64,000 nt of DNA, from NCBI GenBank assembly GCA_002104905.1, contig MCFE01000309.1, positions 1 to 64,000 of the forward strand. Direction: 5' to 3'. The position numbers were made by a program, and so were the translations under genes. Source of the stretch: Basidiobolus meristosporus CBS 931.73 (Eukaryota; Fungi; Basidiobolomycota). A model generated the notes under the pieces. The model did not search any database, had not been told where the DNA came from, and worked only from the letters and a program-made list of their open reading frames with translations. Of this stretch, positions 2,912 to 49,139 are shown one piece after another; position 1 is the first letter of the stretch; every line of letters begins with the position of its first letter.

Positions 2912-4129
2912 ATGGCTGTTGACACCACCGAATTTCCTATCACTGGGCCCACCCTAAGCCCCGAACAGCACACTGGAGCTTCCGCAGAGGCACCTCCACT
3001 TCGTGTGCCTAGAGTTGGCAAAAAGAAGATTTACTTTCAACGTGACTCTCTAAAAAGCAGAGAGTCCAAGGGTAAAGAAGGAAGCCGTCGCCGGAAGCGC
3101 TATGATAACGGTATGTAAAAGAGCCCCTTTAGATAACGGTTCTTCCGCGAAATATTTCCATCTTCCCGCGTTTCCACGTGTTTATACTCCGCATCTAGTC
3201 AGCTGTGGATAAAACAACGTGAGCGAGAAGCACTTCCCTTTCATGAAAAGGCAAAGCTTCTTTGAGCTTGGCTTTTCTATATAGGCTCAGTTCCTCAGAA
3301 TTGCGTTTCCTCTTTGGCTGGAACAATTCTGGAACTAGCTAATGATATTTGAACATTCTATTGAGTTATAATCTCATAATTTCCTCTTCTGTACCTATTA
3401 TGTATCGAATGTTGTCTACCTGCCGTGACTGTTTCATTGGGATAGACCACTTTACACACCTTCCACACGCCGTATTGAATCCAAAGGATCTGGCTCCCCC
3501 TGGCTATCCCGCTGAAGCTCCACGATTCCATTTCAAATACGACCGTGCCATGCAGCAGCTTCTTCAGCACAACTTCATTCATGACATAGACCTACGTGCA
3601 ATGGAGAAGACACCTCAGTGTCCGGAGTCACAGAGCTACATTCATCGATCTATTCGCCGAGAGCTGAAGAAAGCACACGTGTCTGAGGGAATTGTAGAGC
3701 GCCATGAAATAGAGTTGATCGAATTCATAAAGCAGATCTTGGAGCGAGAGGGTCAGCTGGACGATATGGAAGAGGTTCCTGAGGGAGTTAGTGACTACTC
3801 CAGCACCGATTCTGATGACGATACAGACATAGATTCCAAGCACCTGGAATCATTCTCAAAGCAACAACTGTTTCTTGTAATGAACATTCAAGATAGGCAG
3901 ATCCGCTTCGTTGTGCATGCCATGTGCCAGTACTACCACCTGATGTCTTTTAGTAAGTGTAATGCTTACGGCAGTCTACTGTTCCATCACTGACCCCCTG
4001 TTTCCAGGCAAAGATACCAGGTGTGGCCGTCGGCTTACTTACGTATGCCATCCGCGTCTTGTCTTCCCCAACTCACAGAAATCACCAGGGCTTCGGGAAA
4101 AGACGTTTTATGAGTTCGTGTTCCTTTAG
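2912..4129 (+). CDS. R3H-associated domain / R3H domain protein (R3HDM4-like), 3 exons (2912-3110, 3446-3952, 4008-4129)
   Basis: Exon 1 has RDSLKSRESKGKEGSRRRKRYDN (R3H-assoc signature). Exon 2 has PHAVLNPKDLAPPGYP and the R3H-like IQDRQIRFVVHAMCQYYHLMSFS. GT-AG junctions keep the frame. Confidence 0.8.
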
Positions 4130-5807
4130 GGGTCCATACCATTTCATGTTCTCGAATATCGCCACCCCAAAAGAATGTATAGCAATGCCCTTGCAGCCCC
4201 CCTCCATGATAATGCTTTCTCAACGATGCTGTTATTTATTCCATGCTCTTGCCTTCTGGAATACATCCCCATGAAATGGTTCAGTAATTGGTGGCAAATA
4301 TATTGGCACGCCCTCATGAAACTAATTCCAAGCATATCAGTTTACTTTACACACCCTTGGCTCAATATTTGCTAGAGACTATCCTCGACCCAGCCCCCAA
4401 AATGGCTAGGCTTATGACGTGGAGGCACTTGGATAGGCCACCACAAGGAGGTGTGTAGGGTGGTTTGAAACCAATTGAGCCATTTTGGGTCACGCTCCGT
4501 TAACTGCAGTATGGAAGTCATACCCCTAATGGTTACTAGAGCATACGGATCGCAGTGCAATGCATGTGGACGACCATGAGTGGTGATAAAAATCACCGCC
4601 CGTCTCAACAGCAGTAAATTAAAGGCACAAACCGCGCGTAGCATGGTACAGATAGCGCGGAAAGTGGCATGTGACGGACACCTGTATTTGGGCTCTGCCG
4701 TTCCCAGATCGTAAGCTAGCGTTTAGTCATACCAGTTGTCCAGGCCGTCAGCCGCGGCATACACCTCACCAACCCAGCCCGATCGCTACTCCTCTCTTTC
4801 TTGGCCATCTGCTCGAAGATCGATCTGAGATTTAGCAGGTACGCGAAAACAGTTTAGCAGGAAATCCGCGAGTCATTGTGAGTCAGCTCATCATCTGTTT
4901 AGTTGCTGGGTAGGGATTCAGCACTCCTTCTCATCGTGATACGGGCTATGGTACAGAATCTCGTTATGGAAGCCTGATTGCCAATGAAACAACCAGTATT
5001 GACAAACTGCTACGGAGTGTGAAACATCGTTGACGACTTAAGGGCAGCATTTTATTGAGTGTGGTTGCGCATGCATTCGCCATACGTCACCATGGATGGC
5101 TATCGAGAGAGGAGAGGAGGATCCATCCAATTTTCAGCACCTGAAGGCCCGATCAACCAATATTCCCCTCACTGAATGGCCCAAAACGTTATGCTACCTG
5201 CTTTGCCAGAGGTCACAGTGGAGCCCAGCCCATTCTGATTAGCTAATGCTTGGAGCATGCTCACCTGTAAGTCAGCCATTCGGTGCGCTGAGGGAAGGGT
5301 GCTACTGTGGTTGATGCAAGCTTGATTGATGCCATCTGGATATCTTACAAATGTGTATTCAGGATGCTGAACCCTAAAGCAATGTGGGGGCTTCAAGCCT
5401 GGACGGCCGCACTTCTGCCCCGAGCTCTGCGTTGCCACTCATGCCCTCTGCTTGCTTCAATACCAATTGCCATTCTCCACAGATTTTGACAGGACTTATG
5501 GCATGTTGATTGGCTCACTATTTGCAAAGCTGGCAATGTGCAGATTTCTTGATTACTAATTCAATCCGCAACCTCATTTCTGCTCATGGAGATACAATAT
5601 ATTAATCGGATCTGAGCCAACTACCCACAGATCTTAAAGTACTCCGATAAATATCATTAATACCAAAAATCAGGCCATTGCCAGATCTGGATCGTCACCG
5701 TAATCAGTGTGGAAAAACTCAATATATAGAGGCCCACAGCATTAACTTCCAGCTAACAATTACAACACATTTGCTTGGTATCGAAGTACCTTCTCCTAAT
5801 CCACACA

Positions 5808-8411
5808 ATGCTTGTCCAACAGCCACCCTTCCCCAATTCTCGCACCGATCAATACCTGGGCACAAAGTCATTCATCCCCACCAAAGAGGCCGTTGTAACC
5901 ATGGACCTGAGGGTCCAGGATGCCAAGGAAAAGCGGCAAGAGATTCATAGAGCTTTCAACGACACATTTACCCTCTACGAAGACCTCTTCGATGCTATCA
6001 CTGACAAGGCGCACTATATGCGCGCGGATCCGCTGCGACACCCGCTAATATTCTATCTTGGACACACCGCCGCCTTCTACATCAACAAGCTTGTATTGGC
6101 CAAGACTCTGAAGTATAATGAACGTATTGATCCAAGTTTAGAATCATTGGTTTCTGTTGGAGTAGATGAAATGTCATGGTAATTATTATCAAGAAACAGG
6201 TACCTTATTTATGGCCCTTTTGCTTAATCATCTGTTCGCAGGGATGACTTGCTTTCCGACGACTACCCTTGGCCGGCGCTGGAGAATGTACGCACCTTCC
6301 GCTCACAAGTTCGAGAACTTGTGTCCCAAGTGATCCTTGAACGACTCCCCTTGTATAATAACACAGTAATTGATTGGGAGCACCCATTTTGGCCCATTGT
6401 TCTCGCCATCGAACACGAACGTATTCATCTAGAAACGTCCTCTGTACTAATACGCCACCTTCCGCTTTCCGCACTTAACCCCAACTATAACTCTTTCTTT
6501 AGACAAGATTGCAAAGAATGGGACTCCTCGGCTCCTGCTGCAAAGAGCCTCAATTTCGTCGATGTTCCTGCTGGCCATATTACACTTGGTCGTCCCATGC
6601 ATTCAGAGAAGGCACGCACTGCTGCGCACCTCGAGAACCTGACGGATATCTATGGGTGGGACAATGAGTATGGCCACCAAGAAGCACAGGTAAATAGCTT
6701 CTGTGCGGGTGAAAAACTGATCTCCAACGCTGATTTCTACCAATTCGTTCGCGATGATGGCTACCACAAAGAAGAGTATTGGTCCAAAGAGGGCTGGCAC
6801 TGGGTACAGTACATAAAGCCTGAAACACCCAGATTCTGGGTAAAGAAACATGACGGGGCGTACGTATTGAGAAACATGCTCGAGGAAACTCCAACCATGC
6901 CATGGAATTGGCCGGTTGAGATCAATGCCCTGGAAGCTAATGCTTATTGCCGGTGGTATACCCAGAAATTCGGAAGGCTTACTCGTTTGCCTACTGAAGA
7001 AGAGTATTGTCACATGCTTCGATTCGCATTGGAACAAGAGCGTCAGGATACCGGCTCAAACCCCATTGGCCCTGATCACCTGCTCAATAACTGTAATATT
7101 GCCCTCCAGAAATCCACCTCGTCTTGCCCAGTCGACAAGTTCCGCACGGGGCCGTTTTACGACATTATGGGCAATGTGTGGCAATGGACAAAGACGTGTA
7201 TGTATCCATATGCCGATTTTGATGTCCATCCGTTGTATGATGACTTCACTGCGCCTACATTCGACGACAAGCATAATTTAATCAAAGGTGGATCCTGGAT
7301 CTCCACTGGAAATGAAGCAACGATCTATTCGCGGTATGCGTTCAGACGCCATTTCTATCAGCATGCAGGTTTTCGTGTTGTCCAGCCAGCAGACCAAGGG
7401 AACGTGAAGCTGGACGAGGCCGGAAAGGAGGCTGACTTCGAGCCCAAGAACATCTTCGTTACTGGAAACGGCCAGGAAACCTCAGGGAATCCCTATGAGA
7501 CCGATGTTCAAGTGAATCGCTACTGTGAAAGCCACTACGGCCCACAGCCACCGTTTCCCAACGTGCAATCGTTCCAGGCGGTTTCTGCGCGTATCTGTGA
7601 GGCTTTAATGCGGGATTCTGAGTTCGCCAAACTTGGGAATCAAGAGCAAATCCGCGCACTAGATCTTGGCTGTGCAACTGGTCGATCGACGTTCGAAATG
7701 GCCCATTATTTCGACCAGGTAGTAGGTGTTGACTTGTCGGCAAGATTCATACAGGTCGGATACCAATTGGCACAGCAAGGAAGCATCAGATACTCCACAC
7801 CAATCGAGGGGGAGATCCAGGCGCTGCGTGAGGTGGTCTTGGGCTCCAAAGAACTCCCGCTGAATGGATCCGAAGGGTTGACCTTGGTTGAGCAGCTGTT
7901 TGGCCCCCAACCAGTTGACGAGAGTCCCAATGGCTGCCATGCGTTGGCAGATAAAGTATTGTTTCTGCAAGGGGACGCATGCAACCTAAATGCCACCAAT
8001 CCTGTGTATTTCAACTTCCATTGCATCCTGGCTGCCAATATCTTGGATCGACTATATAATCCCATCTCATTCCTTGAAACGATCCATACTAGGATTGTAC
8101 CGGGGGGCTTCCTTGTCATCCTATCGCCAAACACATGGCTACCGGAATTCACGCCGCAGGAGAACTGGATAGGGGGGAAGAAGGTTGACGGCGAGAACGT
8201 ATCCACCCGCGACGGCCTCGAGCAAGTACTGAGCCCATGGTTTGATATTGTTCGGATCAAGCCACGTAACCCCGAATTCCAGGATACATTTGGGAGCGGA
8301 GGCCTGGACGGCCAACTCGAGTCGTTCCATGTTCCATTTGTGCTCCGTGAAACCCAACGCAAGTACGAATTCATTTTCGCCGAATGCACCATCTGGAAAA
8401 AGCGGGCATAA
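5808..8411 (+). CDS. ovoA: 5-histidylcysteine sulfoxide synthase / N-methyltransferase (ovothiol synthase), ~846 aa, one intron 6179-6241
   Basis: DinB-like N-terminus RHPLIFYLGHTAAFYINKL and GVDEMSW|DD. Iron-binding HX3HXE motif EHERIHLET. FGE-sulfatase-like domain with YGWDNEYG, GNVWQW, HPLYDDF, KGGSWISTGNEA and YAFRRHFYQHAGFR. C-terminal SAM methyltransferase with NPYETD, ALDLGCATGRS, QGDACNL and PFVLRETQRKY. Confidence 0.93.
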
Positions 8412-10882
8412 GCTGATGGCAAATCCTCGTGCCATGTCAAATGGGACGATTCAAGGAGCCACCCACCCCCCGTAGTGTAAGCTCAAAATGCAAAATAAAT
8501 TCCATCACCCCAAATGTGTCCCTTGTTCGGGGATCTGGATTCGGAACCTAGTCTTCATCGTGAGAACATCAGGGATACCCAAACCTATTGAAACGCCCGT
8601 CATACACTACAAAGTTCAAAGGGCGCATATAGATTGGAGTTCAATTTGTGTTGGTAGTAGAGATATGGCTGTGTTAGAGCTTTGGTTAGATAGCCCAAGA
8701 AGTAATCTATGTTACAAGTTTATTCCAGTACGGCCATCGTTGGTATTGATAGCAGCCCTCTCCCCAATGTCCCAGACCTGAACCAGAACCAACATTGCCC
8801 ACTGTTTCTTGTGATAGAGGCAGTTGGTTTCAAAACAACCAGCCAAAGCATCAATGTTCTACTGGTAAAACCTGTCTTGGTATACCAACGCACCAACGAG
8901 CTTTAGCCTTGAGTTGATTCATGTTTACTACACACCAGCTTCAGTATAAACTTCAGAGACAAATGCTACTGATTTCTCCACTAGCATGCAACCTGTTCAC
9001 CCTCTCCACTATAGCCCTAATTCTCTAAGAGACACCAGCAAGAAGCTGGTGCTATCTACCATATGTAATAAATCATTGATGGGTGCTCTGGCGTGATGAC
9101 GACGCACCGAGATCCTGCCACTCTGGCCATTCGTAGCAAAGTCCTTGATGAGCGCAGTCACTTGGGGGCATGGAGTAGGCGGGCGGCGGCGAAATCCATC
9201 GGACGGGTTGGAATAACTGAAGTGGTATTTCCGAAAAAGAATGGTTTCCCCTACACAAATATCCGCAAGAAAATCCATCATGGTACACAACGGTTCCTAT
9301 TTGAAGGAATCTATATATGTACCATTGGTGTAGTGAACATTAAATACGTTACATGCTACATTGTGATGTGTTGGTCAAATATGATATAGAATCCTCGGGC
9401 CAATTAGATCTTGGGGCTCAGCAAATCGACATCTCATTGTGCGCTTGATTGGCGGAGCCAAACTGTATTTCTGTCTATCTCCATCCACCCTGGCTGCCAA
9501 TCATTCCTTTGCGTGAGATTTTCAAGAACCCAATATATTATTCACAGGGGGAAGTGAGCGGAATAGCGCTATACCTAATTCGGCTTAGTTCTCATTTTAG
9601 ATGGTGTTCATGTACATCGCTGTTTCAGAGCCCAATTCTAGTAGTGAACGTATGGTTGCATCAATCGCCACCAGAACTATACCAGTAAGAGTATAGTTAA
9701 ATCACTCTTTTCCAGTAATTGACGTGTATCTCCGTATCCTCCCTACTTGGTCTGATTGCTTTCCATGAATAATGTGAGTTCTGTCGAGCATGCCACACAG
9801 GCCTAGGAGATTGATGGCGGAGTCGAAATGGGCTGATGCTGGTTGTATTCAGATGAAATTGGTTGGTGTTTCTATCTTGGGACCGACTTTTCTCCCCAGT
9901 CGTTACATAATAATAAATTTGTTGAACCAGTGGATATTTGTAGATATCCATGTGAATGTGCAAGAGTAAAATCTAATCGGCCGATTCCCAAAGTCGTAAT
10001 GTAAAGCATATGGCATTTTGTTTGATGTATTAGGGGGGATATCGACTTCAAATGGAGATGCAACGGAACCCTTATTCCATATAAACGCCAAATAAGGCTA
10101 ATCAGGCAATATCGTATCTGCCCCGGAAGTCTTATTAGGCATCTTCACATATGAAAAACATCGACTGACTCCATGTGCATCTGATTTTCAATGGACTCCT
10201 GCAATTCGTGGCTTGGAGATTGCAAGAATAGTCCGAACTCTTCCCCTTGACACCCGAAGGGCCAGGATCGTATTTTTCGCTCCGATGAATGAGGGGATCT
10301 CTCACACAACACTAATGCACCCTCAGCATTTGAACTTGCTTGGTTCTGTATGTGCTCTCGAGGTCTACACCTCACTAAGCCATAAGTGGTTAGTTTCAAA
10401 TATTCCGCTGGTGTTTCAATTGATGGCGATGTAGCATTGAGACGCTATCATGTGATTGCCTCAATCTATCCCGTCAATTGATCATTGTTTTGGGGGGGGG
10501 GCTTTCCAATACATGTCTGTAACTATTCTGCCCTATCACTCACTTCGGTATCATGTTTCATAGCAAGAATTGCAATGTTCATTTGGCAGGAGAGAAGCAT
10601 CACCGTGGTGCTACAATTACAGTGTTAAGGGGAGATTCCTAGTGATCCATGAGGAGAGGTGGCTCTTTATAGTAATGGTATTTTGAAATGTGCTGTCTTG
10701 CATTGCACTCCATTGGTATTGCATCGTAGTTGATTGCACCGCGGTTGTCAAGTACCATAGACACTGGTTCCGAATTTTGCTACGGCATGTGGCGTAACTG
10801 GCCACATGTTTGTATTTGTCGTATGCCTATTTCTTTGCGGCCAAGGATGGATTCCAACAATAGCTTGAATCCCTTACATATG

Positions 10883-10888
<6 letters not shown>

Positions 10889-10942
<54 letters not shown>
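10889..10942. repeat. Compound microsatellite (TA)15(TG)12
   Basis: Read directly from the sequence. Confidence 0.97.
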
Positions 10943-13181
10943 CGAATGTATATATGCCTTATTCGAATGAGGTCTCGTACTCAGGTAGCTTCCCAAGATA
11001 TTCACCACTGCTTCGTCCTCTCCTGCACCCTACGATCGATGGGAAAGGCAGCAATCTGCTTGCGTGTCACCTCGACCTTTCAATGGAGTAAACCAATTAA
11101 TATAACTTTGATTTGCAGATATAAGGACTCAGCTGAAGTTGACACAGAATCCGATAGGTTGTCTTATTCAGCAGGCAAGTCACTTCCTCGCTTCCCGTAT
11201 GTGTAGATCTGAATTATATATGCATTAAAATGCCTGATCGAGATCATTCTCCCATAGCCAAATGGCGCCACGGGCCAATGGGAAGCACTTCCAGCGGGTC
11301 TACTTGATTAGATTTTCCTAGATGTATCAAACCCTAGTCAGAAAAGCATTGTGCCCCCTCATTTCCTCATTCTGATAGGGGATCCCAAAATAGAAGATAG
11401 CGCGGTTTGGATCCATTCCATTATAGGCTCTAGCATTGCAACAGTTGTCAGCTGACTGGATACCTGGGTTGCTGTAAGTACCCTCGACACCCACTTTACA
11501 GCGCCCATTGCAATTTATTGAGCTGCCAAGTAGCCACATTGAGGAGATTCAATGCTGTCCGGAAGCACTTCCTGATGCATAGGCACACCAGCGCCTCATA
11601 AATAAATCTGATCTCCAGGTGATAAGGGTTGGTACATGTCATGTACATCATGCTATTAGTGGGGTGAGGAATCCATCAGGTCTCTGGTGATCATTGGGCG
11701 GGTTTTCAAATGTGATTTGCTTCTGGATGATTTAGCCATGGCATTTGTTGGGGAGTTGGTTGGGTTGTGGGTAATAAGATGAAACAAGGCGGGTGTCTTA
11801 ACATCACTTCATTGACTCATAGACCACAGTATGAGGTTCGACAATGAGGTTTTGAACGATTGAAGCAAAGGTCAGTTGAGCATTGCAGTTAGAGACAGGT
11901 TTTATTACTTTAACATGAATAATTTTGATTAAATCTGTGTCTCGCGCCTAGAACGTATGTCAATCGCTTCTAACCTAGGTAACTACGTGTCAGTGGCTAG
12001 CCGGTGTCTATCCATTGCCAACCACACGCAAGGCAACTCCCCTCCCCAACAACTTTAACAGCAGCAGCATCTAGTGGTCATGATTCAATACTAGCTGCCA
12101 CCTCCGCGCCTGCCTCACCAGTTGCTAGCCATCAATATGAACACCTCAGATACATTCAGCCATGGGAAGATCAAGGGAATTCGTGAATTTGGGGCAGACA
12201 AATCCAGTTTTTGCCAACAAAATACAAGACTACGCTAAATAGAGGGGGTGATATTTGGTTGATCCATCCGACACGGAGAGATACTCGCCTGCAGAAAACA
12301 AGCCGCTGCATCTGAGAAACATGCTTTCCCATCACCATGCGGTCTAGAGTAGCTGAGCCTGGAAGCGCATACTTGGCATCCAGCTGCAAATCGTCAGGAT
12401 GCGATTAGTGGGTAGCAAACCTTAACTTATGAACCATCTCTTCTATTATTATTGCGGGATGCTGGCCAATGAGGGCCGTTCTGCAGATTATAGTCGCTCA
12501 AATACAAAGAACGGAATAGGAATAGCCCGTTTCGCCATTGGCCAGGTTTGAGAGGAGACGAACCTGGCGGGCTAAAGATCAGGACAACCTCTAACCAAAT
12601 TAGGGAATTATCCAGAGGGTACTAAGAAAAGGTTTGGTATGAAGAAGGCAGTTGGTCAGCCTTTTGCATCATTTTAGTGGCAAAATTAAGCCGACCTGGT
12701 TATACAGAAAGCTTTTAGTCGATCCTATTTTTTTGGTGAAGAGGGTTGACCAGTAAAAAGATTTGCTGTGATACGATGTTACTGAAATACTGGCCTCTTT
12801 GCCATATTCGGCCCACAGCATTGTAGCATTATCCTGCCCGTTCATTCGATAGACGGCAGTTACAAACATGCGAAACATCCGCTCTTTTCTATATAATCCC
12901 AAGTGCGTACTCCCCCGAACCAGATTACTCCTCTTTTTCTAGACCTCATTGACTCGATTCTATCGAAGCTTCTCTCAGCACCTCAACCGAATTTTATTTT
13001 GAAATCCCATCCAGCCACTCTCTATTAGATACATTAGTCCACTGCCTGTCCTTGAAGCCATTAATTAATACCTCCTTTGCCTAAAATATTATATTGTCGA
13101 CTGTTGGACCAAGCACTTAGTACCTTATGCAATAGCAATCAGCTCCGAAACCTTTCCTACTTTGATCACTATCCATTCAAG

Positions 13182-13673
13182 ATGACTGAAAAAGCTCGAC
13201 AGGATGTATCAAGGCTCGACATAGCTTTCTTATTGAACACTTCAGAGGATGCTGTAGATCAAGGCATATCCGTGACGATCGGATGCTCCAGCACTTTGCT
13301 TTGTGGAAGAGATGATGCTGCTTCGCGAGAATCTGACGATGCACAAGAATATGAGCAAGAGATAAGGTTGCCAAGCCAGTCCATGTCAACTGACAGCTCC
13401 CTCTCCTCTTCCGACCCCATGAATGATTCGAACAAAAGACATCAATGCACCCTATGTTCAAGGAGCTTTCAGAGGCCCAGTGCGCTTCGAATCCATATGT
13501 ATTCTCATACAGGCGAGAAGCCGTTCGAGTGTAGCTACCGGGGGTGCCAGAAACGCTTCAATGTGGAGTCGAATTTAAGACGGCATCTACGGACCCATCT
13601 ACCGCTCCCACAACAGCCCGTGCGAGGAAAGAAAGCCCGACTCAAGTGGGTCAATCTCTCTCACGAGCCCTAG
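13182..13673 (+). CDS. Two-finger C2H2 zinc-finger transcription factor (Nrg1-like architecture), ~163 aa, intronless
   Basis: HQCTLCSRSFQRPSALRIHMYSH-TGEKP-FECSYRGCQKRFNVESNLRRHLRTH, plus an N-terminal LDIAFLLN repressor-like motif. Start taken at the ATG at 13182. Confidence 0.85.
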   Translation: MTEKARQDVSRLDIAFLLNTSEDAVDQGISVTIGCSSTLLCGRDDAASRESDDAQEYEQEIRLPSQSMSTDSSLSSSDPMNDSNKRHQCTLCSRSFQRPSALRIHMYSHTGEKPFECSYRGCQKRFNVESNLRRHLRTHLPLPQQPVRGKKARLKWVNLSHEP

Positions 13674-15092
13674 GCCTCAAGTCATCAACACCGTTCTGTA
13701 AGAAGAATACCTATCACTAATCCACGATATCATCCCCTTTCATGTCATCAAAGTAATTCATTGTTGTCTTTTTGATCATATGACCTCATTCATCAATGAC
13801 ACATGTATTTTCTTTCTGTAATATTTTGAAAGAACGCATTGGTAGCGCATCCCACCTCCAGCTAAGCCAAATGTAAAAAGCAATAGACATTCCTTGTTCA
13901 AATATAGCACGGGCCATTACCATCTCATCTTCCGCCACTCAGTGGACAGGGGTCAGTTACGTTGTTGTGCGATTCACGACTGTGTCTGTTCTGAAGCCAC
14001 GCTATCGAGTACGGACCACTCTTAGAGGCCCTCAGCCACGATGCCTGCCCTGCGCAATTTGGACAGCGCTTATTCACTGGACGAAACAACCCCCGAGTGA
14101 CGCGGCCGTGGAGAGAAAACAACTGCCCAGGGTTCGCCCGTGAGCAGCAGCGATAATAATAGCAATGACAATAGCCATAGTAACGGTGACAGCAATAGTA
14201 ATACTATCGCACGATACAGGCAATGTCACCAGTCAGAAATAGTGGCCGTAACCAATTGCAGTTAGTGTTGAACCCTCGAACATTGCTCAACGAATGTACG
14301 GATTGGTCCAATGCCAACTATTTGCTGATGAGATGAACCACACTCCTAGTCTATGGTATATGTGAGGGGTTGTTTAGTCCACACCATCTAAGATGCCGGC
14401 GATAAAACCAGAACGAAGCTTACCATATTTGGGGGCAATTTATATATTCTATGTGTACGGAAAAGTGCAAATTACTTTGGTGTCACCGTTATCAACCTCA
14501 ACAAACCTGGCCACATGCATGCTCCGATAACCCTATGGAAATGCCAATTCCATCCGCTGCATGGTATGAGCTCTACAGGGCTGCTTCGAAGGCCAAAGCA
14601 GCAGTCCCTTGGATCCAGCACAGCCGCAGATACATCCCCCTGGCGTAGCTAATGGCGAGGGGTGGTGGAACGGCTGCTTTGACGTGGGCCATCGGCCAAT
14701 TCTGTAGTGCTCAGAGTATTGACTTTTCGTATATACAGCATACGTTTGTATCACAGAACAGGTCGCTAGTCGTATGGAACACTGCCGATTTTGGGTCAAA
14801 CAAATAATGTTCCAATTTGTGCCTGGGTCCACGATTGCAATCCCTATTCCAAATGCACCCTGCCCAACACAGTTACTTTTTCTGGGGTGGCCAAATACTC
14901 GCCTGGTTGGGAGACCAGCGTCGAATCGTAGGGCAGGGGCGTTAACGGTCAGCCCGTCTTGTGACCCGCCTGAAAATGATTGTAAAATCCACTTGTACAC
15001 TAAAAAAGCATTTATTGTGTTGTATCTCATATATTGAACAGTGTTGGAGTTTGCTAAGGCATGGTGCGAAATTCGGGGGCCATTAGGTGAAT

Positions 15093-16901
15093 TCACATTA
15101 GACCAATCGACCCACGTCTCTTGCGCTCGTGGTACTTCGCAATGAGAAGTGCTACATCAAGCGATTGTTCGTAGTTCAACCTGGGGTCACAGGATGTCTG
15201 GTAGTTCTGCGGGAGATGGTGGTGCTCCAGCTCCATGAAGCCTCCTACGCACTCGGTTACACTGTCTCCGGTCATTTCTAGATGCACCCCGTTCAAAGTA
15301 CGCCCATACTCCTGGTGAATTCGGAAGCTACGGCTGATTTCTTCGACGATGCTGCGGAAATTGCGCGTCTTTACTCCCGAGCTCGACTGTTCGGTACTGA
15401 TGGAAGCAGTTAGCATCCGGCGAGGCGAGGCTACATAGGAGTGAGGATACTTACTTTCCGTGCATCGGGTCACATGCCCACACCACAACATGGCCGGACT
15501 CCTTGACCGCCTTGATATGTCCGGGGAGATACTTATCGACCTAGGGAAACGCAAGTGAGTCGATTGACGTTGGGATGTAGGGTGTGTAATGCATAATTAC
15601 AAGGTTGCAGCCGTAGCGAGTGATCAGTGTGACTTTGCCTATTTCTTTGTTAGGGTTGACGATGTCCAACAGCCTGCCCAGCTCTTCTGGCTCCATCGAT
15701 GGCCCACACTTGATGCCGATGGGGTTCTCGATACCCGAGAAATACTCGACGTGGGCCCCGTCTATTTGCCTGGTGCGATCGCCGATCCAGATGAAATGGG
15801 TGCTTGTGTTGTACCACTTCAGCTCTTGGGTGTCTGGATCGGGGAGCTCCCTCGTGAGCGCCTCCTCGTAGGGGAGAATCAGCCCTTCGTGAGATGTGAA
15901 GAAATCGATGTTGCTGATTTGGCTGGCGTCAGCGCCCACTACCTTCATGTAGTTCAATGCATCGGACAGACGGTTAGCTATGGACTGATACTCCTCTCTG
16001 GTGTGGCTATTCCGGAAATGTTGCAGATCCCATGCGGTGGGGTCGTGAAGGACTAGGTTGGACCGTTTCAGTGAACATCCCAAACTAACAATCAAATACA
16101 AATGGGACTAACCAGCAAAGTCGGCTAAGTTCGCATTGAGACGCAAGGGGATTAGTGGGAATTCTTGAAACATCTGCAACAGGGCTCAACTTACAATGCA
16201 AGATTGTTCGAACATAGTTCATGCTGGCCGCGGAATGGAAATATGCCCTGGAAACAATGAAACGTCGGTGTCAGTGGTGGGGTCCCCAAGCAACGTGTCT
16301 GCCACTCTCACCCTAATAGCCGCTGTGGATCGGGCTTGCGCTCCGACGGGTCAAATCCGTTGACGTTGTCGCCACGGAAGGAAAGAACCTCCTTTCCATC
16401 GATGATCTCTGTAGGCTTGGAGCGTGGCTTCGCGTACTAATAGCCAATGACTCAGTTTCGGGCCACATCGTGGGGGAAAGAAAATCAAGTTACCTGGCCG
16501 GCCATTCTGGCGATCCTCACCACTGGGATTCTGGCTCCCCATGTTAAGATCAGGCTCATCTGGAGGATGATTTTGATCTTGTTCTCGATGGGCACCTTCG
16601 AGCAATAGTCGAACAGCTCGGCGCAATCCCCACCTTGCAACAAGAACGATTTCCCAAGGGCCACATCGGCCAACTGCTCCCGGAGATTCTTGATCTCCCG
16701 AGGGGAAGTCATGGGCGGCAGATGGCGCAACTTCGCCAACACCTTGTCTAACTCTTCTTTATCGTCGTAGATCACATCTTGGGTGACCTTCTTGCTTCTC
16801 CAGGAACTAGGCGACCATTTATTTCCGCTTGTCTCGGTGTTTCTGTCCTCAATGTCGAGCTCAACCTTATCAAACATTTCTTGGAGTTCGGATGGATCCA
16901 T
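15093..16901 (-). CDS. Class II 3-deoxy-D-arabino-heptulosonate 7-phosphate (DAHP) synthase, multi-exon
   Basis: Motifs [30 protein letters not shown]|[86 protein letters not shown] and [11 protein letters not shown], joined by GT-AG introns. Confidence 0.95.
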
Positions 16902-17745
16902 CGGGAGAACTTGAGAATAGGTAGATTTGCAGGAAAGTGGCAGCAGGAAGAGAGTCACTGGCGAGCTAATTGGAAATGATTTGACATTTCGTGCCGACTC
17001 TAGTTGGCTTAAGTACTTGGATGGGCCGCCAACTACACCACACTGAATGACACTCTAATGATGGCCAACGGGGCTCTTGATTCGAGGTGATCAATGAGCA
17101 CCCATATCGCCATGATGTTTCAACTGCCCAAGATTATGCAGGATATCAAGGTTCATGCAACGCTTGTTGACCACCAATACCAGCGCCCGAATGATTAAGC
17201 CTGGTGCCTCTAAGACTTCCACTTGCCAATCATATGCCTACTACGATGGCGCACTTATGCCCGGCCCACCATCAAGCCAATATCTTTCATTGCATGAGTG
17301 AAAAGTGTTTAGAGGTAAACTCACCCAATCCACCCTGTGCGATGAGACTCAACAGCCCAATTTGCTGGGAACTGTGTAAACATTAGCTAGTAACGACCAT
17401 TGCGCCAAGCTTTGATTATTGAGACAACCTCGGCTACTCACAATTCCAGCAACCACCGACATTGTTGGTAACATCGGTGATCCGCTTCTGCAGGCCATCC
17501 ACCCATCTGACACAGGATCACCCATCGGGAGCCCATAAAAACCTTTGTATGAAAGAGTGTAACGAAAACGTGGTCGAATAGGTGGATGTTTGAAAGCTGA
17601 AACTCGCCCGATAGTCCAGATAAGGGGAATCTTAAAAACTTTCGAACAGTTTATTACAGCATGGGGCCGAGACGAAATTGTAATCAACGTACTACGCAGA
17701 AATTCGTGTGGAGATTGGGGGGACGTCCAACAGTTGGAAATCCCT

Positions 17746-18495
17746 TTAGTTCTTGTAACCACGGCTGGCGCGACGACCTCTAGCACGCTCGAACTTGCGT
17801 CCCTTGGAGCGAACGTAGGGCTTGGCATGGCTCTTGGGAACACCGGCAGCACCGAAGTGCTTGACGGCCTCGCGAGAGTTCTTGGGACCTCTCAGAAGGA
17901 CGGTGTTGGCACCGGTGGGGGCGCGAAGGGCCAATTGGTCGAAGGTGATGATCTCTCCACCAGCCTTGAGGATTCTGGCGCGAGCGGTCTTGGTGACACG
18001 AAGAGCACAAACGCTGAGCTTGGGGACTTCCAAGAGACGCTCATCATCGGTTACGGTGCCAACAATGACGGCGATCTTTCCGTCCTTACCCTTGGCATAG
18101 CGAGCCAAACGGGAGATAGAGAGGGGAGCGCGGTTGACGCGGGACATAAAGAGACGCTTAAGAATAACCTTGTTGAACTTGGCGTCGGTACGACGAGCAA
18201 GGAAACGGTACAACTTCACCAACAAGCGAAGGTAAACATCCTGGCTACGAGGCTCAGTTCTGTTGCCGTTCTTGACGTGGTGTTTTTTAATGTCGATACC
18301 CTAGGGAAAGAATTCGTTAGGTTAGCACACCATTCGTAATCGTGATGACCGATCTCATTCATCCATCAGTAGAGCCGTATATCTGGGCAGCGGTAGGTCT
18401 CTTCTGTCGTGAGAAAACCCCCGCCCCAATGAATTCTATCTCTGCTGGAGGATGTGGAGTAGCTAGCAACATATACAGGAATACACACTGACCAT
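17746..18495 (-). CDS. RPL18: 60S ribosomal protein L18 (eL18); ATG followed directly by intron 18301-18492
   Basis: M|[61 protein letters not shown]...[25 protein letters not shown], 185 aa. Confidence 0.97.
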
Positions 18496-41270: not shown

Positions 41271-44200
41271 TGTTGTAAAAATTTGTATTTCCACCTAAAT
41301 ATTCACATAATTTAGTCACTTAGATCATTACCTTCAAATCCTAGAGAATACTGACCAAATTCTTTGTTGGTATTTACTTAGAATATTTTCACCAAAACAC
41401 CAGGTACCCAGAACATGATAATTCTCAAAGTTGTCCAAACAGCCCCAAACTTTGCACACATGCTCTTGGGACCTTCCTTAACCTATTCTACGTGTTTTTA
41501 ATGCCCAGGCCAGGTGAAAGTATAAATACTACTTTTACATTCAATAAATCATTAAGTGAAAGCAACATAATCTATTTGTCATCCAAATCACTTCCAATAT
41601 CTCCAAGACTCTTACAACAGGCTATGAGCCCCAAGCTGTCACTCTCTGCAATGTCTACTTATGCTATTACTGGAATTTTTCCCTCTGCTGAAAAGTTGGA
41701 TGGATTTAACTACCAAGTGTGGAAGGTGAAGATGAAGATGCTGCTACAAGAAAGAGGCCTTTGGGATATTGTCATGGGAGAAGAATGCCCTCCTAAAAAC
41801 ATGGGAGAGGAAGCCTTGAATTACCAGAAGAAAGAACAAAGTGCCTTTAACTGCATTTGTCTTAATGTCAAGGACAAATTGCTAATTCAATGCTCAAGAG
41901 CAAAAATGGCAAAGAATGCCTGAAAAGCATTAGAAGACACCTACCAGTCATGTTCAGCTGCCAAGAAAATGTATCTGAGAAGAAAATACTCTACTACAAA
42001 GATGCTGCCAGGAGAAGTAATGAAAAATCTAATTAACAGAATTACCCTGCTGGTAGATGAGATGGAATCTGTGGGTGTACCAACTGCTGATGAGGATGTG
42101 ATAGTTACCATCCTGAATAGCCTGACAGACAAGCTTTGGGGCCTTGTATCAGCCCTAGAGTCCAGAACTGAAGATTTGACCTTAAATTACATATATGGAA
42201 GGCTCCTGGATGAAGAATTAAGAAAATCAAGCGCTAATAAGAAGGAAGAAGAAAATGCTTCAATAAGCAATGATAGCCAAGAAAGGAGGTACCCAAGACC
42301 CTACAAAGGCAACAGCAGCCTATTTTGTAACTACTACAAAAGGAAAGGACACACATCAGACTGGTGTATCAAAAAGAGAGAGTATCAGCAATAGAAGCCT
42401 GAATATGGCAATGCTGCAACAACTGAAGATAGACTATTCATATCTGCACAATATATGACCACAAACAAGGATTCTCCGACGTGGTATATTGACTCTGGAG
42501 CTTCTCAACACTTTACACACCAAATGAACTTTTTACCCAATATCAAGAAATTCCAGTTAAGAAGGTTTTCATGGGTGATGATAGAACACTTGATGCAGTG
42601 GGAGAAGGAACTATCCAAGTAAACCCTAGAAGCAGTGAAGGAAGCCATACACTGACCTTTAAAGAAGTACTCTATGTACCAGAAATAGCCAAGAACCTAC
42701 TCTCTGTAAGCAAGGCCACAGCAGAAGGACTTGGTTTCAGTTTTGCCAATTCTGCATGCAGGATCACTGATCAAAATGGTGCCCATATTGCTTTGGGTAT
42801 CAGAGATCAGAGCCCATACAAGTTGACTTATATTCCATCATATTTCAAAGCCAATATAAGTAACTTAAATGAAGAAACACCAATGATTTGGAACAGGTGA
42901 ATTGGGCACATCAATTTTAATTATTTGCGCAAAATGATTAAAGATCAGCTAATTTCTGGAGTGAAAATTGATCCCCCACTAATTTGAAGCACTGTGAAGC
43001 CTGCATATATGGGAAACAAGCCAGTCAACTGTTCAAGAGCTCTGGGTTAATAAAAACTAAGAAAAAATTAGATCTAATTCACTCAGATCTGTGTGGACCT
43101 ATGCAAAATTTATCCTTAGGCAGGATGAAGTATTAAATCACTTTTATTGATAATTATACAATATACACATGGGTCTACTTCATGGTGAGAAAGGAAGAAG
43201 CTCTGTCTAAGTTCAGGGGGTTTAAAGCCATGGTGGAGAGAAACTGGTGAAAAAATCAAGAAAATATGCTCTGACAATGGTGGAGAATATACCTCAAAAC
43301 TCTTCATCCACTTCTGCAAAATTCATGGGACAAAGCAAGAGACTACTGTACCACACTCCCCACAGCAAAATGGAGTAGCAGAACAAGCTAACAGATCAAT
43401 AATTGATATGGCAAGATATATGATCCATGATCAAAAATTATCCTATGATTTTTGGGCGGAATCAGTTGGCACTGCTGTATACCTTAGAAATAGGAGTTAT
43501 AACAGGATACTTCGTGATTCTACTCCATTTGAAGCATGGTATGGATACAGACCAAGTGCAGAACATCTAAGAATATTTGGGTGTACAGCATATGCCAAAA
43601 AACTGGCTGGAAATCAGTCAAAATTTGAGCCAAAAAGTGTAAAATGCATATTTTTGGGCTGCTGCAATGAGAGTAAGGCATACAGACTCTACAATACCAA
43701 AGCAAAGAAGCTGATCAAGTCCAGGGTTTTGTTGTTTGATGAAAATTCAAAATTTTCACAAGAAATGACATCATATGATGACCAAAATTTGATCTCAAGT
43801 CCACCAATTGTCAGGACTGAATCAGAGCAAAACAATGAAAATTTTTTCACTCCAGAGGACTCTACAACCATGGTTCAGCCAGAATTGGTGTCCAGGAATA
43901 TCCCAGAAGTGATCATTCCAGTATCAAATGCCCCAAGATCCAATTGGACAAGCAGTAGCCCAAATTACTATATCAATGAGGGTACAAACTTAGCCTATGC
44001 CTATTCAGTCCATGTTGATGAACCCCAGACTGTGAAAGAGGCCCTAAATAGCCCTCAGATGAAGTTTTGGAGATCTGCAATGACTGAGGAATATCAGGCC
44101 CTAATGGAAAATCAAACTTGGGACTTAGTTAAATTACCAATCAACCAAAGATTGATTGGATGCAGATGGGTCTTCAAGACAAAATACAAGGCTAATGGTA

Positions 44201-44676
44201 CAATTGAAAGATACAAAACAAGACTTGTAGCCAAAGGATACTCTCAAACAAAAGGACTTGACTATACTGAGACCTTTGCACTGGTAGCCATGTTTAGCTC
44301 CATCAGATTAACATTGGCTATTGCAGCCAAATATAAGATTTTTATTCATCAAATGGATGTAAAAACTGCATTTTTGAATGGAGAACTTGATGAGGATGTG
44401 TATATGGACCAGCCTGATGGGTTTGTTGACCAAGATAACCCCCATTTGGTCTGCAAGCTTAAAAAGTCACTCTATGATCTCAAACAATCACCAGGAGCAT
44501 GGAATTGCAAGATAGATTCTTATTTGGAATCTTTGAGTTTCAAAAGAAGTAATGCCAACTATAGCATATACTATAAGCCAGATAGAGCAAATCCAGTTCT
44601 GTTAGCTCTATATGTGGATGATCTTATTATAGCCGCCAATAACCTAGAAACATTGGAACAGACTAAATCCAGTCTG
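41271..44676 (+). mobile_element. Decayed Ty1/Copia, 5' LTR 41271-41619, PBS, gag-protease-integrase-RT, truncated in RT
   Basis: PBS GGCTATGAGCCC at 41620. Motifs LDGFNYQVWKVKMKMLL, WYIDSGASQH, IHSDLCGP, SDNGGEY, QNGVAE, RLVAKGYSQ and LYVDDL. Several stops and frameshifts. Confidence 0.92.
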
Positions 44677-46921
44677 AAACATTTGCTTTTCAACAATATC
44701 CCTATACTGATGAACAAGAAGTACATGGGGCATTTCAAGCTAAATGAGCCCTTTGAGATACCGGAGAAATTTGAAGAAACTGGTAAGATATTACAGAGTA
44801 TCTGCTACCCTAAGTACTTCTCACAGGCTCCAATATATATTTATACGCATATGCAACAATACAAATGCAACGACTGGATGAACTGGATATGTATTTATTC
44901 AAGTGGTGTTCTGAAGCCATTCCTGCCAAGAGTACATTGGAAGCATTGGGAGTCATATGTGGACATTGTAGGAATATTTATTCAGAAGCGGATCACCAAT
45001 GCCAACTTGACGCATCTACAGCTGTTGTGTGAGGAGTGTGTGATGGGATTTGAGCAACTATACACAAAACATAAAGCTGAATGCGTAGATCTCTGCCGCT
45101 ACTGTGTCCATTCTCTACTCCATCTTGCATGGTGTGTGGAGAATATTGGGCCTTGCTTCACCTTTTGGGTGTTTCCTATGGAGCAGATGTGTGGGAGATA
45201 GGAAGACAAGTCAAGTTGCAGGTACTATCATATCCCAATCTCATCAAGAATATTACCTTCAAGTCCATCATGGATGTGATGAGTTGGCACATGGAGGACA
45301 GCCAGAAAGAGTTGGAAAATACTGAGGACAAATGTGCACATGGAGACACCTATGCCTATGGCATTAAGAAGCTAGGCAGCCCCAATGCGTGGGTAATCAA
45401 TTAAGTAATGCAAAGTTGGGATGGGTGCAACAAGCAACTGATTTTTATCAGGAAAGCTCCACCAAGATATGCCAGATTTCTTGTGGTCACAAGCCAACTG
45501 CTACACCATTCAATATGGAATTCACATAAACAAAAGCCAGAGCGCACCTATAAGGGGGACTAGAATCCAGCAGGGAGAAGGAATATATTGGCTAAATACT
45601 AAGAAGTTCTTTGCCAATATTCAGGATGTATTCATGGCAGAAGTGGCAACAACCAAGCATATATTTGCAAGATGTATATGCTAGCAGTAGTACAAGGTAT
45701 ATGGCAACTTTGCAAGTATCACACTAAAAAGCCGTAAAGTTGATGTGATAGAAGTATGCCAATTGCGGCAGGTGTGCGCATTTGTAGAGGTTAGTAAGAA
45801 GGAGGCCATAGTTTTTTTTGATTTGAACTATATGTGGAATACCCAAGGTAGTAGTGGGTTAGCAAATAAATAAGGTGATTCTACAGTGGAATATATGAAA
45901 TGCACAAGGGGAGGTAGAAAAAGGAAAAACCATTTGGTAAATTGGTACAGTAGCATTGTACAGAACCAGCAGCAGGCTGTCATACTGCCAAGAAAAAGCC
46001 ATCAGAGTCTTGCTGTGAGGCCGTCAAGATACCATCAAGTTTCTTGCCATATAAGGCAATTGAAAGCCCTGGCCAACTGGATCCACTTAAAATAGTAATA
46101 GCGCGCTGAAAGACCGCAACAATACCATGCAACTATTGTCACAGCACCAATCAAAAATTGTCAAGCTTTATCCCTTTATTTGGCTGTAAAATTTGCAAAA
46201 CATCATTGTGATCTTGTTATAAGATTGTCAGGAGGGTCACTGATTCCAAGCTGCTGTTATTATGACGGTCTCTAAACAGGATCTTGACGGATGATCTGAA
46301 TTGGATCCACCCATGGGACCAAATTATTTTTTATAGGGATGAGTCCATTGGAGTTAGGTGAGATAAAGAGATGAATACATCAGTTGTTGGAGCACAGAAA
46401 TATCAGACCCAGCAAGTCATCTTGGGGAGCACCAGTGCTTTTTGTGAGAAGGAACAATGAAGCACTTAGGGTGTGCAGTTATTACAGAGCCCTTAACTCA
46501 GCTACCACAAAGAGTTAGTAGCCCATACTTTGGACTGATGGGCTCCTACACCAATTCAGTGAAGCCACCATATTCAGCAAGATTAACCTCATGTCAGGAT
46601 ATAGCCAGATTATAGTGAAACCAGAAAACATACCTAAGACAGCATACTGGACCAGATATGGACCTTACAAGTACCTGGTAATGAGTTTTGGCCTCACCAA
46701 TGCCCCTGCAACATTCATGACCTTGATGTAAACCATTTTCCATGCATACATTGATACATTTGTGGTAATTTACCTTGATGACATATTGATATACAGCAAG
46801 ACAGAACAGGACCACTTGGTGCACATTGAAAAGGTCTTAAAGAAGCTAAGAGAGAACAAATTGTATGGCAAGCTATCAATATGCAAATTCTTGAAGGAAC
46901 ATGTTGAATACTTTGGACACA

Positions 46922-48488: not shown

Positions 48489-49139
48489 TTACTCTTCATA
48501 ATGCTCCAGACACATTTCTCTCAGTGGATGTCTTCTTGTATGAACATACTGTGCATTGATAAGTATCTTAACTATTTTACCTATTCTGCTGTTTTCTCCT
48601 ATATATGACTTTCCTCTGTATTTACCTACCAATATGCTGAATCTCTTCAGATATCCAAATGTGTGCTCTACCCTTACACTGAAATGATTAGATATCTCAT
48701 TGTAGAGCTTCTGCTTCCTGCTAAGTACACCATTCCTTGGCTTCCTATAAGCTGTAATACATCCTAATCTCTGACAATCCTCTCCTATATAAGCTAAGTC
48801 TACCATACATTTCTCCCCTCTACTGAATTCAGGATGATTCTCTACCCAGAGTGCTTTGTCATGCCTACTTCCAGCAAATGGCCCACTAAACCAGATGATG
48901 TTACCCTCAATGTCAGACAGTGCTTGAAACTTCACACAGTGTGCCTTGTACTTGCCAGAATAAAAGTGCCTCAGCCCTCTAGAAGGTCTGTTAATCCTCA
49001 CTGGGAAGGTATCCAAAATACTCCTGATATGGAACCTGTTGCTGAACACTCTGGGATATGGAAGTCTATTGGAGCTTCTGAACCTAGTATGCCAAGCTTG
49101 CTCTAAGTCATTCATACCCTCTGCAAGGTGGTTCTCCAT
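48489..49139 (-). CDS. DDE_Tnp_4-type (PIF/Harbinger/IS5-like) transposase; frame is open upstream to ~49455 without an in-frame ATG
   Basis: ILDTFPVRINRPS, FYSGKYKAHCVKFQ, GPFAGSRHD, VDLAYIG, RKPRNGVLS and RVEHTFGYLKRFSIL. Confidence 0.85.
   Translation of the reverse strand: MENHLAEGMNDLEQAWHTRFRSSNRLPYPRVFSNRFHIRSILDTFPVRINRPSRGLRHFYSGKYKAHCVKFQALSDIEGNIIWFSGPFAGSRHDKALWVENHPEFSRGEKCMVDLAYIGEDCQRLGCITAYRKPRNGVLSRKQKLYNEISNHFSVRVEHTFGYLKRFSILVGKYRGKSYIGENSRIGKIVKILINAQYVHTRRHPLREMCLEHYEE

Follow-up and report, generated by a model that had tools for sequence, protein, structure and literature searches.

Ovothiols rank with the strongest thiol antioxidants in nature, and research on them has concerned marine animals, trypanosomatids, algae and bacteria. 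The structure of OvoA_Th2 from Hydrogenimonas thermophila, a bifunctional sulfoxide synthase/methyltransferase, is known (8KHQ; PMC10696552), and the OvoA enzymes of Erwinia tasmaniensis and Methyloversatilis thermotolerans have been characterised biochemically (PMC8943887). Reviews assign ergothioneine to fungi and the ovothiol pathway to other eukaryotes (PMC8433421). A gene of the OvoA family is located in the early-diverging fungus Basidiobolus meristosporus CBS 931.73, at positions 5808-8411 on the forward strand of contig MCFE01000309.1 (assembly GCA_002104905.1). The stretch of DNA analysed here, referred to as the window, comprises bases 1-64000 of this contig. The structure of the gene, the family of its product and the conservation of the catalytic residues are established by the gene model and alignments described below. 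Our reading, to which we assign a probability of about 85%, is that this is a functional nuclear gene predicted to encode a bifunctional OvoA, one of two old paralogues under purifying selection, in a long-form eukaryotic lineage that is closest to bacterial OvoAs.

The list of open reading frames (ORFs) in the window contains a 720-codon ORF at 6249-8411 (+) and a 135-codon ORF in a different frame that ends at 6182. In the sequence between the two, a GTAATT donor is found at 6179 and a CAG acceptor ends at 6241, and joining 6178 to 6242 restores the codon of Trp124 with the frame intact. Exon 1 (5808-6178, +) encodes residues 1-123 and provides two bases of the Trp124 codon, while exon 2 (6242-8411, +) provides the last base of this codon, residues 125-846, and the stop codon at 8409-8411. 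The spliceosomal intron (6179-6241, +) is 63 nt long with GT..AG ends, and its GC content is 0.35 as compared to 0.50 in the exons. The translations of the two exons are identical to residues 1-123 and 125-846 of the 846-aa protein K493DRAFT_48442 (P0001), which is deposited as a hypothetical protein and was recovered at 100% identity in the word search. The coordinates of the gene also agree exactly with the deposited annotation. The intron is called on the basis of this gene model, the canonical splice sites, the restored frame, and a paralogue whose intron agrees in position and phase (see below). The original prediction had claimed a complete OvoA at 5808-8411. This claim holds, as the stretch corresponds to the gene for the deposited 846-aa product and both OvoA domain models are passed; the 63-nt intron is a feature that was absent from it.

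The two exons were searched separately against domain models, and full-length results refer to the deposited protein. The full-length protein scores 564.3 bits with the NCBIfam model ovoA_Nterm (TIGR04344, cut-off 400, E = 1.8e-169), covering positions 3-444 of the 444 in the model, and 231.6 bits with ovoA_Cterm (TIGR04345, cut-off 170, E = 9.5e-69). With such E-values for two OvoA domain models, a chance match is far excluded. By exon, TIGR04344 gives 432 bits for exon 2 alone and 108 bits for exon 1. In comparison, the EgtB model (TIGR03440) reaches only 145.7 bits against a cut-off of 360, and the SenA model (NF041186) 141 bits against a cut-off of 420. The N-terminal methyltransferase of the EgtD type, which is required for Egt1, was not found in the protein. 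The OvoA model begins at residue 32, and the 31 or so residues that precede it have low model confidence and are not conserved in the paralogue. A mitochondrial presequence of the kind reported for the diatom OvoA was considered for this short stretch and is not favoured.

A search of solved structures by sequence ranks 8KHQ first, with 453 bits, followed by the cyanobacterial EgtB-IV, with 191 bits. EgtB-IV (8VIH, 8VIG) lies in the OvoA-like branch of the family (PMC11030361). The Basidiobolus protein does not belong to EgtB-IV, as it has two domains, and its scores are 453 bits with 8KHQ and 191 bits with 8VIH. Its C-terminal half matches the stand-alone methyltransferases OvsM and OvoM among solved structures, both by sequence and by fold. 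These results support the assignment of K493DRAFT_48442 as an OvoA, and not as an EgtB, Egt1 or SenA. The automatic UniRef name of the paralogue is already 5-histidylcysteine sulfoxide synthase.

In the 8KHQ structure, the metal is bound by H71, H162, and H166, and Y406 is hydrogen-bonded to a water at the oxygen site (PMC10696552). The cysteine substrate is held by R62, Y68, and the V102 backbone, and the histidine substrate is contacted by F409 and T413 (PMC10696552). In HMMER alignments with the Basidiobolus protein, the three metal ligands correspond to His86, His182, and His186, and the substrate contacts correspond to Arg77, Tyr83, Val119, Phe459, and Thr463, respectively, so that the three-His metal site and all five contacts are present. 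The first ligand is located in the motif RHPLIFYLGH (6036-6065, +), together with Arg77 and Tyr83 of the cysteine-binding network. These residues align with R62, Y68, and H71 of 8KHQ, whose roles are known (PMC10696552), and they are invariant in our alignment (A1). The second and third ligands, as well as Glu188, are located in EHERIHLET (6411-6437, +; residues 181-189), where His182 and His186 are invariant in 80 sequences. The motif HPLYDDFTAPT (7227-7259, +) carries the catalytic Tyr456 and the histidine-substrate contacts Phe459 and Thr463, the equivalents of Y406, F409, and T413 (PMC10696552); its HPLYDDF portion corresponds to 7227-7247, residues 453-459. Tyr456, which also aligns with Y405 of the M. 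thermotolerans enzyme (OvoA_Mtht), is at the position that controls sulfoxide synthase versus dioxygenase activity, and it is invariant in the 80 sequences. The spacing of the catalytic residues is likewise the same in OvoA_Mtht (His68/159/163 and Tyr405) and in the Basidiobolus protein (His86/182/186 and Tyr456) (PMC8943887). Overall, the nine active-site residues described for 8KHQ are all kept (9/9), and they are invariant or nearly so across the 80-sequence alignment. The window coordinates of the motifs were verified by translation.

The structure model produced by AlphaFold2 from the 80-sequence alignment has a mean predicted local distance difference test (pLDDT) score of 89.2. A search with Foldseek finds the four chains of 8KHQ as the top matches (E about 6e-78, about 823 aligned columns). 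The root mean square deviation to 8KHQ is high, which reflects the relative orientation of the two domains, and the two-domain OvoA fold is present. The next matches are EgtB-IV on the N-terminal domain and OvoM/OvsM on the C-terminal domain (template modelling (TM) score 0.9). The N-terminal domain superposes on EgtB-IV with a TM score of about 0.89, but EgtB-IV is a single-domain protein of about 465 aa.

The overall organisation of the protein is thus that of 8KHQ, its best solved match by sequence and by fold, with the same domain order and with identical metal ligands, catalytic Tyr, and substrate contacts. [quoted passage not shown] Exon 1 contributes its DinB-like N-terminal part, which aligns with residues 18-106 of 8KHQ. 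The C-terminal methyltransferase domain, dependent on S-adenosylmethionine (SAM), follows at 7488-8408 (+; residues 540-846). It is of the OvoA C-terminal/OvoM type and matches Pfam Methyltransf_31/23/12/25/11, and its SAM-binding motif I, LDLGCATGRST (7659-7691, +), is kept across OvoA relatives. A Methyltransf_31-type C-terminal domain is also found in the E. tasmaniensis and M. thermotolerans enzymes.

There are differences from 8KHQ as well. The two proteins are about 37-45% identical, with 846 aa in Basidiobolus and 728 aa in 8KHQ, and the Basidiobolus enzyme is eukaryotic, from an intron-bearing gene. In the Basidiobolus protein, the synthase domain gains a 16-aa insert, the linker is extended by about 25 aa, and the methyltransferase domain carries two inserts, of 30 aa and 20 aa. 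The synthase insert (i3; 6594-6641, +) has the sequence PMHSEKARTAAHLENL. The extended inter-domain linker (i4; 7383-7487, +) spans residues 505-539, with pLDDT below 50 at 530-539. The first methyltransferase insert (i5; 7848-7937, +; 30 aa, KELPLNGSEGLTLVEQLFG...) contains a modelled helix at residues 667-677, with pLDDT of about 86-97. The 20-aa insert near the C-terminus (i6; 8259-8318, +) is the second mark of the long-form clade described below. In 8KHQ, the methyltransferase domain makes a dimer contact through a β-hairpin at G653-K662 (PMC10696552).

The other sulfoxide synthases of this superfamily, namely Egt1/EgtB type III, bacterial EgtB, SenA, and OvsA, share the non-haem iron fold (DinB-like and FGE-sulfatase-like), the three-His site, and the active-site Tyr. 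The Basidiobolus protein differs from Egt1, EgtB, and SenA in that it is far below the EgtB and SenA cut-offs, and its methyltransferase is C-terminal and of the OvoM type, without one of the N-terminal EgtD type. On these grounds the original prediction was right to call the protein an OvoA rather than an EgtB or Egt1, to assign a SAM-methyltransferase to the C-terminus and the catalytic Tyr to HPLYDDF, and to read EHERIHLET as the iron site. Its DinB, FGE-sulfatase, and methyltransferase architecture stands in part. Pfam finds FGE-sulfatase (2e-26) and several SAM-methyltransferase families in exon 2, but no family above threshold in exon 1, DinB_2 and methyltransferases included. The exon 1 stretch is nevertheless covered by TIGR04344 from model position 3 and aligns with the N-terminus of 8KHQ.

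The genome contains a second OvoA gene, K493DRAFT_314731, on contig MCFE01000163.1. Its product has 833 aa and is 80% identical to K493DRAFT_48442, and the two proteins have nearly equal ovoA_Nterm scores (574 and 564 bits, respectively). The intron of the paralogue is in the same Trp codon, with a sequence that has diverged. In an alignment of 719 codons from exon 2, the proportions of nonsynonymous (pN) and synonymous (pS) differences are 0.116 and 0.83 (saturated), and pN is 0.10 for the methyltransferase part. The saturated pS together with the low pN indicates that the duplication is old and that both copies are under purifying selection.

The neighbours of the paralogue are genes for proteasome lid subunits, threonine synthase, and RPL18. 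A tblastx comparison shows that positions 2912-18411 of the window are collinear with the paralogue region (L007:4973-19823), with four gene pairs: a hypothetical gene, OvoA, a C2H2 zinc-finger gene, and RPL18, the products of the last pair being 96% identical. Genes for an FAD monooxygenase, threonine synthase, and a HEAT protein are present only in the paralogue region, and DAHP synthase only in the window. The collinear block indicates a segmental or whole-genome duplication. A second assembly, GCA_040143965.1 (JASJQH010000406.1, L011:1162-4551), preserves this surrounding of the paralogue. There, an OvoA gene that is cut by the contig end, and whose N-terminus shares 81% identity with K493DRAFT_48442, has threonine synthase directly upstream. 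The neighbours in the window are a class II DAHP synthase, RPL18, a C2H2 protein, an F-box protein, two Ty1/copia elements, and a DDE_Tnp_4 transposase. The contig and the OvoA gene are confirmed as fungal, in a chromosomal context, on the basis of the spliceosomal intron, the copia elements, and the collinear paralogous block with a second OvoA. The original prediction had placed the enzyme in a fungal genome and had named a non-fungal contig as what would count against it; the intron, the paralogous block, RPL18, and the copia elements bear out the fungal origin.

A stand-alone gene related to the OvoA C-terminus, K493DRAFT_311473 (P0365), is located on contig MCFE01000038.1 (L012:8001-8966). 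It is intronless and encodes a methyltransferase of 321 aa that is 50% identical to residues 538-845 of OvoA, inserts i5 and i6 included, with an ovoA_Cterm score of 220 bits (cut-off 170). Its neighbours are eukaryotic (MutL-type, FHA-RING, and Forkhead genes). P0365 looks like an OvoA C-terminal domain that has become a separate gene.

Next to the two Basidiobolus proteins, the word search ranks four proteins of 849-920 aa with 41-55% identity (P0003-P0006), and below them only bacterial OvoAs, of about 703 aa and 41-44% identity. A profile of six long proteins added two more (P0123 and P0124), while a profile of the second subgroup added none. No further long-form cluster beyond these eight was found in an exhaustive search of 1.84 billion representatives. 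The long-form relatives (the paralogue, P0003-P0006, P0123, and P0124) share inserts i3-i6 and form one clade with K493DRAFT_48442, with a support of 99 for the eight proteins. The contigs of P0003, P0005, and P0124 are eukaryotic, with genes for C2H2, DAG kinase, TTI1, and RAB3GAP2; a split PI3K; and MCM and F-box, respectively. The environmental and Logan long-form genes differ from those of Basidiobolus in that they read as single ORFs, without the intron.

Insert lengths, as measured against P0001, set this clade apart from other OvoAs. Insert i3 has 9-21 aa in the eight long-form proteins, as compared to 8 aa in a protein from a Bdellovibrio metagenome-assembled genome (MAG) and about 3 aa in ordinary bacterial OvoAs, and i4 has 16-27 aa as compared to about 3 aa in bacterial OvoAs. 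Insert i5 has 28-37 aa in all eight, as compared to 0-7 aa in 21 other OvoAs, with the exception of P0293 and P0311, which have unrelated insertions of more than 200 residues at this site. Insert i6 has 14-40 aa in all eight and at most 4 aa in the 21 other OvoAs. Both i5 and i6 are also carried by the stand-alone methyltransferase P0365.

The Bdellovibrio MAG OvoA (P0305, MFN7728072.1) joins the long-form clade with a support of 98-99. It has 767 aa and is encoded on a clearly bacterial contig (JBKCUU010000023.1, L009:6852-10304). Inserts i3 and i4 are partial in this protein, and i5 and i6 are missing. The gene is divergently paired with an Aminotran_1_2/Aminotran_5 gene, likely the OvoB lyase, and neither Basidiobolus copy has such a neighbour. 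Full support is obtained for a clade that holds the long-form proteins and P0305 together with proteobacterial OvoAs and those of Hydra and a protist from MMETSP, apart from a group that contains Cyanophora. Forcing the long-form proteins to join the Cyanophora-type group costs 93 log-likelihood units (approximately unbiased test, p = 0.002), a grouping that was chosen after the tree had been seen. One member of the Cyanophora-side group is on a bacterial contig, and this group is therefore not purely eukaryotic.

These results suggest that the long-form OvoA is an old acquisition from bacteria that predates Basidiobolus. A 2026 preprint reports a single group, nested in heterotrophic bacteria, for most OvoAs of plants, animals, and stramenopiles. 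If Cyanophora represents this main eukaryotic group, the Basidiobolus lineage would be a separate acquisition, a step that draws on few named sequences. A fuller account can be offered only tentatively, at somewhat less than even odds. Basidiobolus and a handful of other eukaryotes would carry a separate long-form OvoA lineage, derived from Bdellovibrio-like or proteobacterial-type bacteria and independent of the algal/animal clade. The lineage would have been remodelled by the two methyltransferase inserts, an intron, duplication, and the spin-off of a stand-alone methyltransferase, and the fungus would be a genuine ovothiol producer, possibly beside ergothioneine, with its own variant of the enzyme.

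The OvoA-like proteins of Hydra vulgaris (P0334 and relatives) have 1290-1450 aa, with several loci in one 90% cluster, and they group with the MMETSP protist transcript and not with the Cyanophora-type group. A bacterial contig from Logan (ERR15949122, L010:7775-16565) carries an 807-aa OvoA-like gene followed by an overlapping 417-aa methyltransferase gene. It is flanked by genes for gamma-glutamyl transpeptidase, flavin monooxygenases, an AMP-binding enzyme, and an acetyltransferase, and this locus may be a cluster for a modified thiohistidine.

The rest of the window contains mobile elements. A Ty1/copia polyprotein ORF of 1305 aa at 56885-60799 (-) appears intact, with gag, a protease-like barrel, integrase, and reverse transcriptase. 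A partial copia ORF at 43408-45198 (+) has reverse transcriptase and an SH3-like domain, and a DDE_Tnp_4 (Harbinger/PIF-like) transposase ORF is found at 48492-49139 (-). The GC content shifts from 0.43-0.52 over the gene-bearing first 24 kb to 0.36-0.43 over the repeat-rich region 24001-64000.

By comparison with characterised OvoAs, the Basidiobolus enzyme's N-terminal domain would bind Fe(II) through His86, His182, and His186. A separate C-S lyase dependent on pyridoxal phosphate (PLP) would release 5-thiohistidine, and the SAM-dependent C-terminal domain would add a methyl group to a ring nitrogen, yielding the redox-active thiol ovothiol A. An ancient transfer from bacteria, followed by a segmental or whole-genome duplication, may have led to the two OvoA paralogues that are kept today. 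By analogy with the characterised enzymes, it is a sound prediction, as the original one had it, that B. meristosporus would make ovothiol A.

Several points weigh against this reading. A lyase of the OvoB type was not found adjoining either OvoA copy, in the two neighbourhoods examined. The threonine synthase beside the paralogue also depends on PLP, but it does not belong to the OvoB type. Enzymatic or metabolite evidence for any fungal OvoA was not found in the literature searched. The characterised OvoAs also have cysteine dioxygenase activity, and with hercynine they show the regiochemistry of ergothioneine-type enzymes (PMC10696552, PMC8943887), so that the product in vivo depends on the available substrates. 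Finally, the proposed origin rests on quick trees (posterior mean site frequency model and FastTree) with few named eukaryotes; among the 20 representatives, only Hydra, the MMETSP protist, Cyanophora, one EukProt entry, and the Bdellovibrio MAG are labelled, and the rest are mostly Logan proteins.

With regard to the chemistry, the enzyme could instead be an ergothioneine-type (C2) sulfoxide synthase that acts on hercynine in vivo, like the OvoA-derived cyanobacterial EgtB-IV, and feeds ergothioneine. Fungi are ergothioneine producers, EgtB-IV is the second-best solved relative by sequence, its structures superpose on the N-terminal model with TM scores of 0.88-0.89 by target, and characterised OvoAs convert hercynine to an ergothioneine-type product (PMC10696552). 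We consider this alternative very improbable, since the score to the OvoA structure 8KHQ far exceeds that to EgtB-IV (453 against 191 bits), the curated OvoA N-terminal cut-off is passed, the solved EgtB-IV chains have a single domain of about 465 aa, and the residues that contact histidine in 8KHQ are all retained. Moreover, the C-terminal methyltransferase is intact and of the OvoA type, passes its own cut-off, and is under purifying selection (pN 0.10), although it would be needless for ergothioneine. A second possibility is that 5-thiohistidine is made for another product, such as ovothiol B or C, an acylated or dipeptide thiohistidine, or a larger metabolite, with stand-alone OvoA-type methyltransferases taking part. 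The genome does encode such a methyltransferase with the same inserts (P0365, 50% identity, 220 bits), secondary metabolism in Basidiobolus is unusually rich (PMC7466969), and two papers describe other 5-thiohistidine derivatives in bacteria (PMC12631010, PMC13674229). However, neither OvoA copy has biosynthetic partners clustered with it, the fused methyltransferase is of the ovothiol A-forming type by the curated model, and no sequence feature indicates a particular alternative product. This possibility is therefore unlikely, though less so than the ergothioneine alternative.

With regard to the gene itself, bacterial contamination, or a recent Basidiobolus-specific transfer from gut bacteria, would be consistent with the fact that the best-scoring relatives after the long-form clade are all bacterial OvoAs (~703 aa, 43-46% identity), that the closest relative outside this clade is the Bdellovibrio MAG protein, and that the gene has a single intron only. 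Many bacterial transfers are reported in Basidiobolus, and transfer from bacteria, mostly Proteobacteria, has been proposed for 2-5% of its gene models (PMC7466969). Contamination is nonetheless rejected in view of the intron, the saturated divergence of the paralogues, and the eukaryotic neighbourhood, and the alternative as a whole is scarcely credible. A spliceosomal intron is present at the same codon in both paralogues, synonymous sites are saturated between them, and the gene is located in a collinear duplicated block with RPL18, other eukaryotic genes, and copia elements. In addition, the closest relatives (50-57% identity, with i5 and i6) come from other eukaryotic contigs, whose genes include DAG kinase, TTI1, PI3K, MCM, and F-box, and a well-supported branch separates the long-form clade from every sampled bacterial sequence. 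Any transfer would thus be old and predate the genus. It is also very unlikely that K493DRAFT_48442 is a silent or decaying duplicate and that only the paralogue K493DRAFT_314731 is functional. A look-up of sequencing runs for 5700-8500 listed none of RNA, and Pfam DinB_2 is faintly detected on the paralogue and not on K493DRAFT_48442, but all 846 codons read through without interruption, the splice sites are canonical, the catalytic residues are all intact, and the curated OvoA scores are near equal (564 and 574). The pN of 0.116 at saturated pS over 719 codons also points to purifying selection on both lineages for most of the time since the duplication. A functional OvoA of the long-form lineage, retained in two copies, is thus the preferred reading.

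The presence of OvoA homologues in fungi is not a new idea, and public databases already include the protein. Castellano et al. (2016) cite the 2011 discovery paper for OvoA identified in silico in fungi. In the literature searched, no paper joins Basidiobolus or early-diverging fungi with ovothiol, and the main text of the paper on horizontal gene transfer in Basidiobolus (PMC7466969) does not mention this gene. What is new here is a small long-form clade of eight clusters with shared methyltransferase inserts and a likely separate bacterial ancestry. Since the chemistry and the structure of this enzyme class were known before, the gain is in its distribution and evolution rather than in its mechanism. 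The gene is one more case in the evolution of OvoA in eukaryotes, which is patchy and prone to transfer. Basidiobolus lives in the vertebrate gut. A fungus with two conserved OvoA genes would be a cultivable system in which to ask whether two thiohistidine pathways coexist in one cell, what each pathway contributes, for example in the vertebrate gut, and what role the clade-specific methyltransferase inserts may have.

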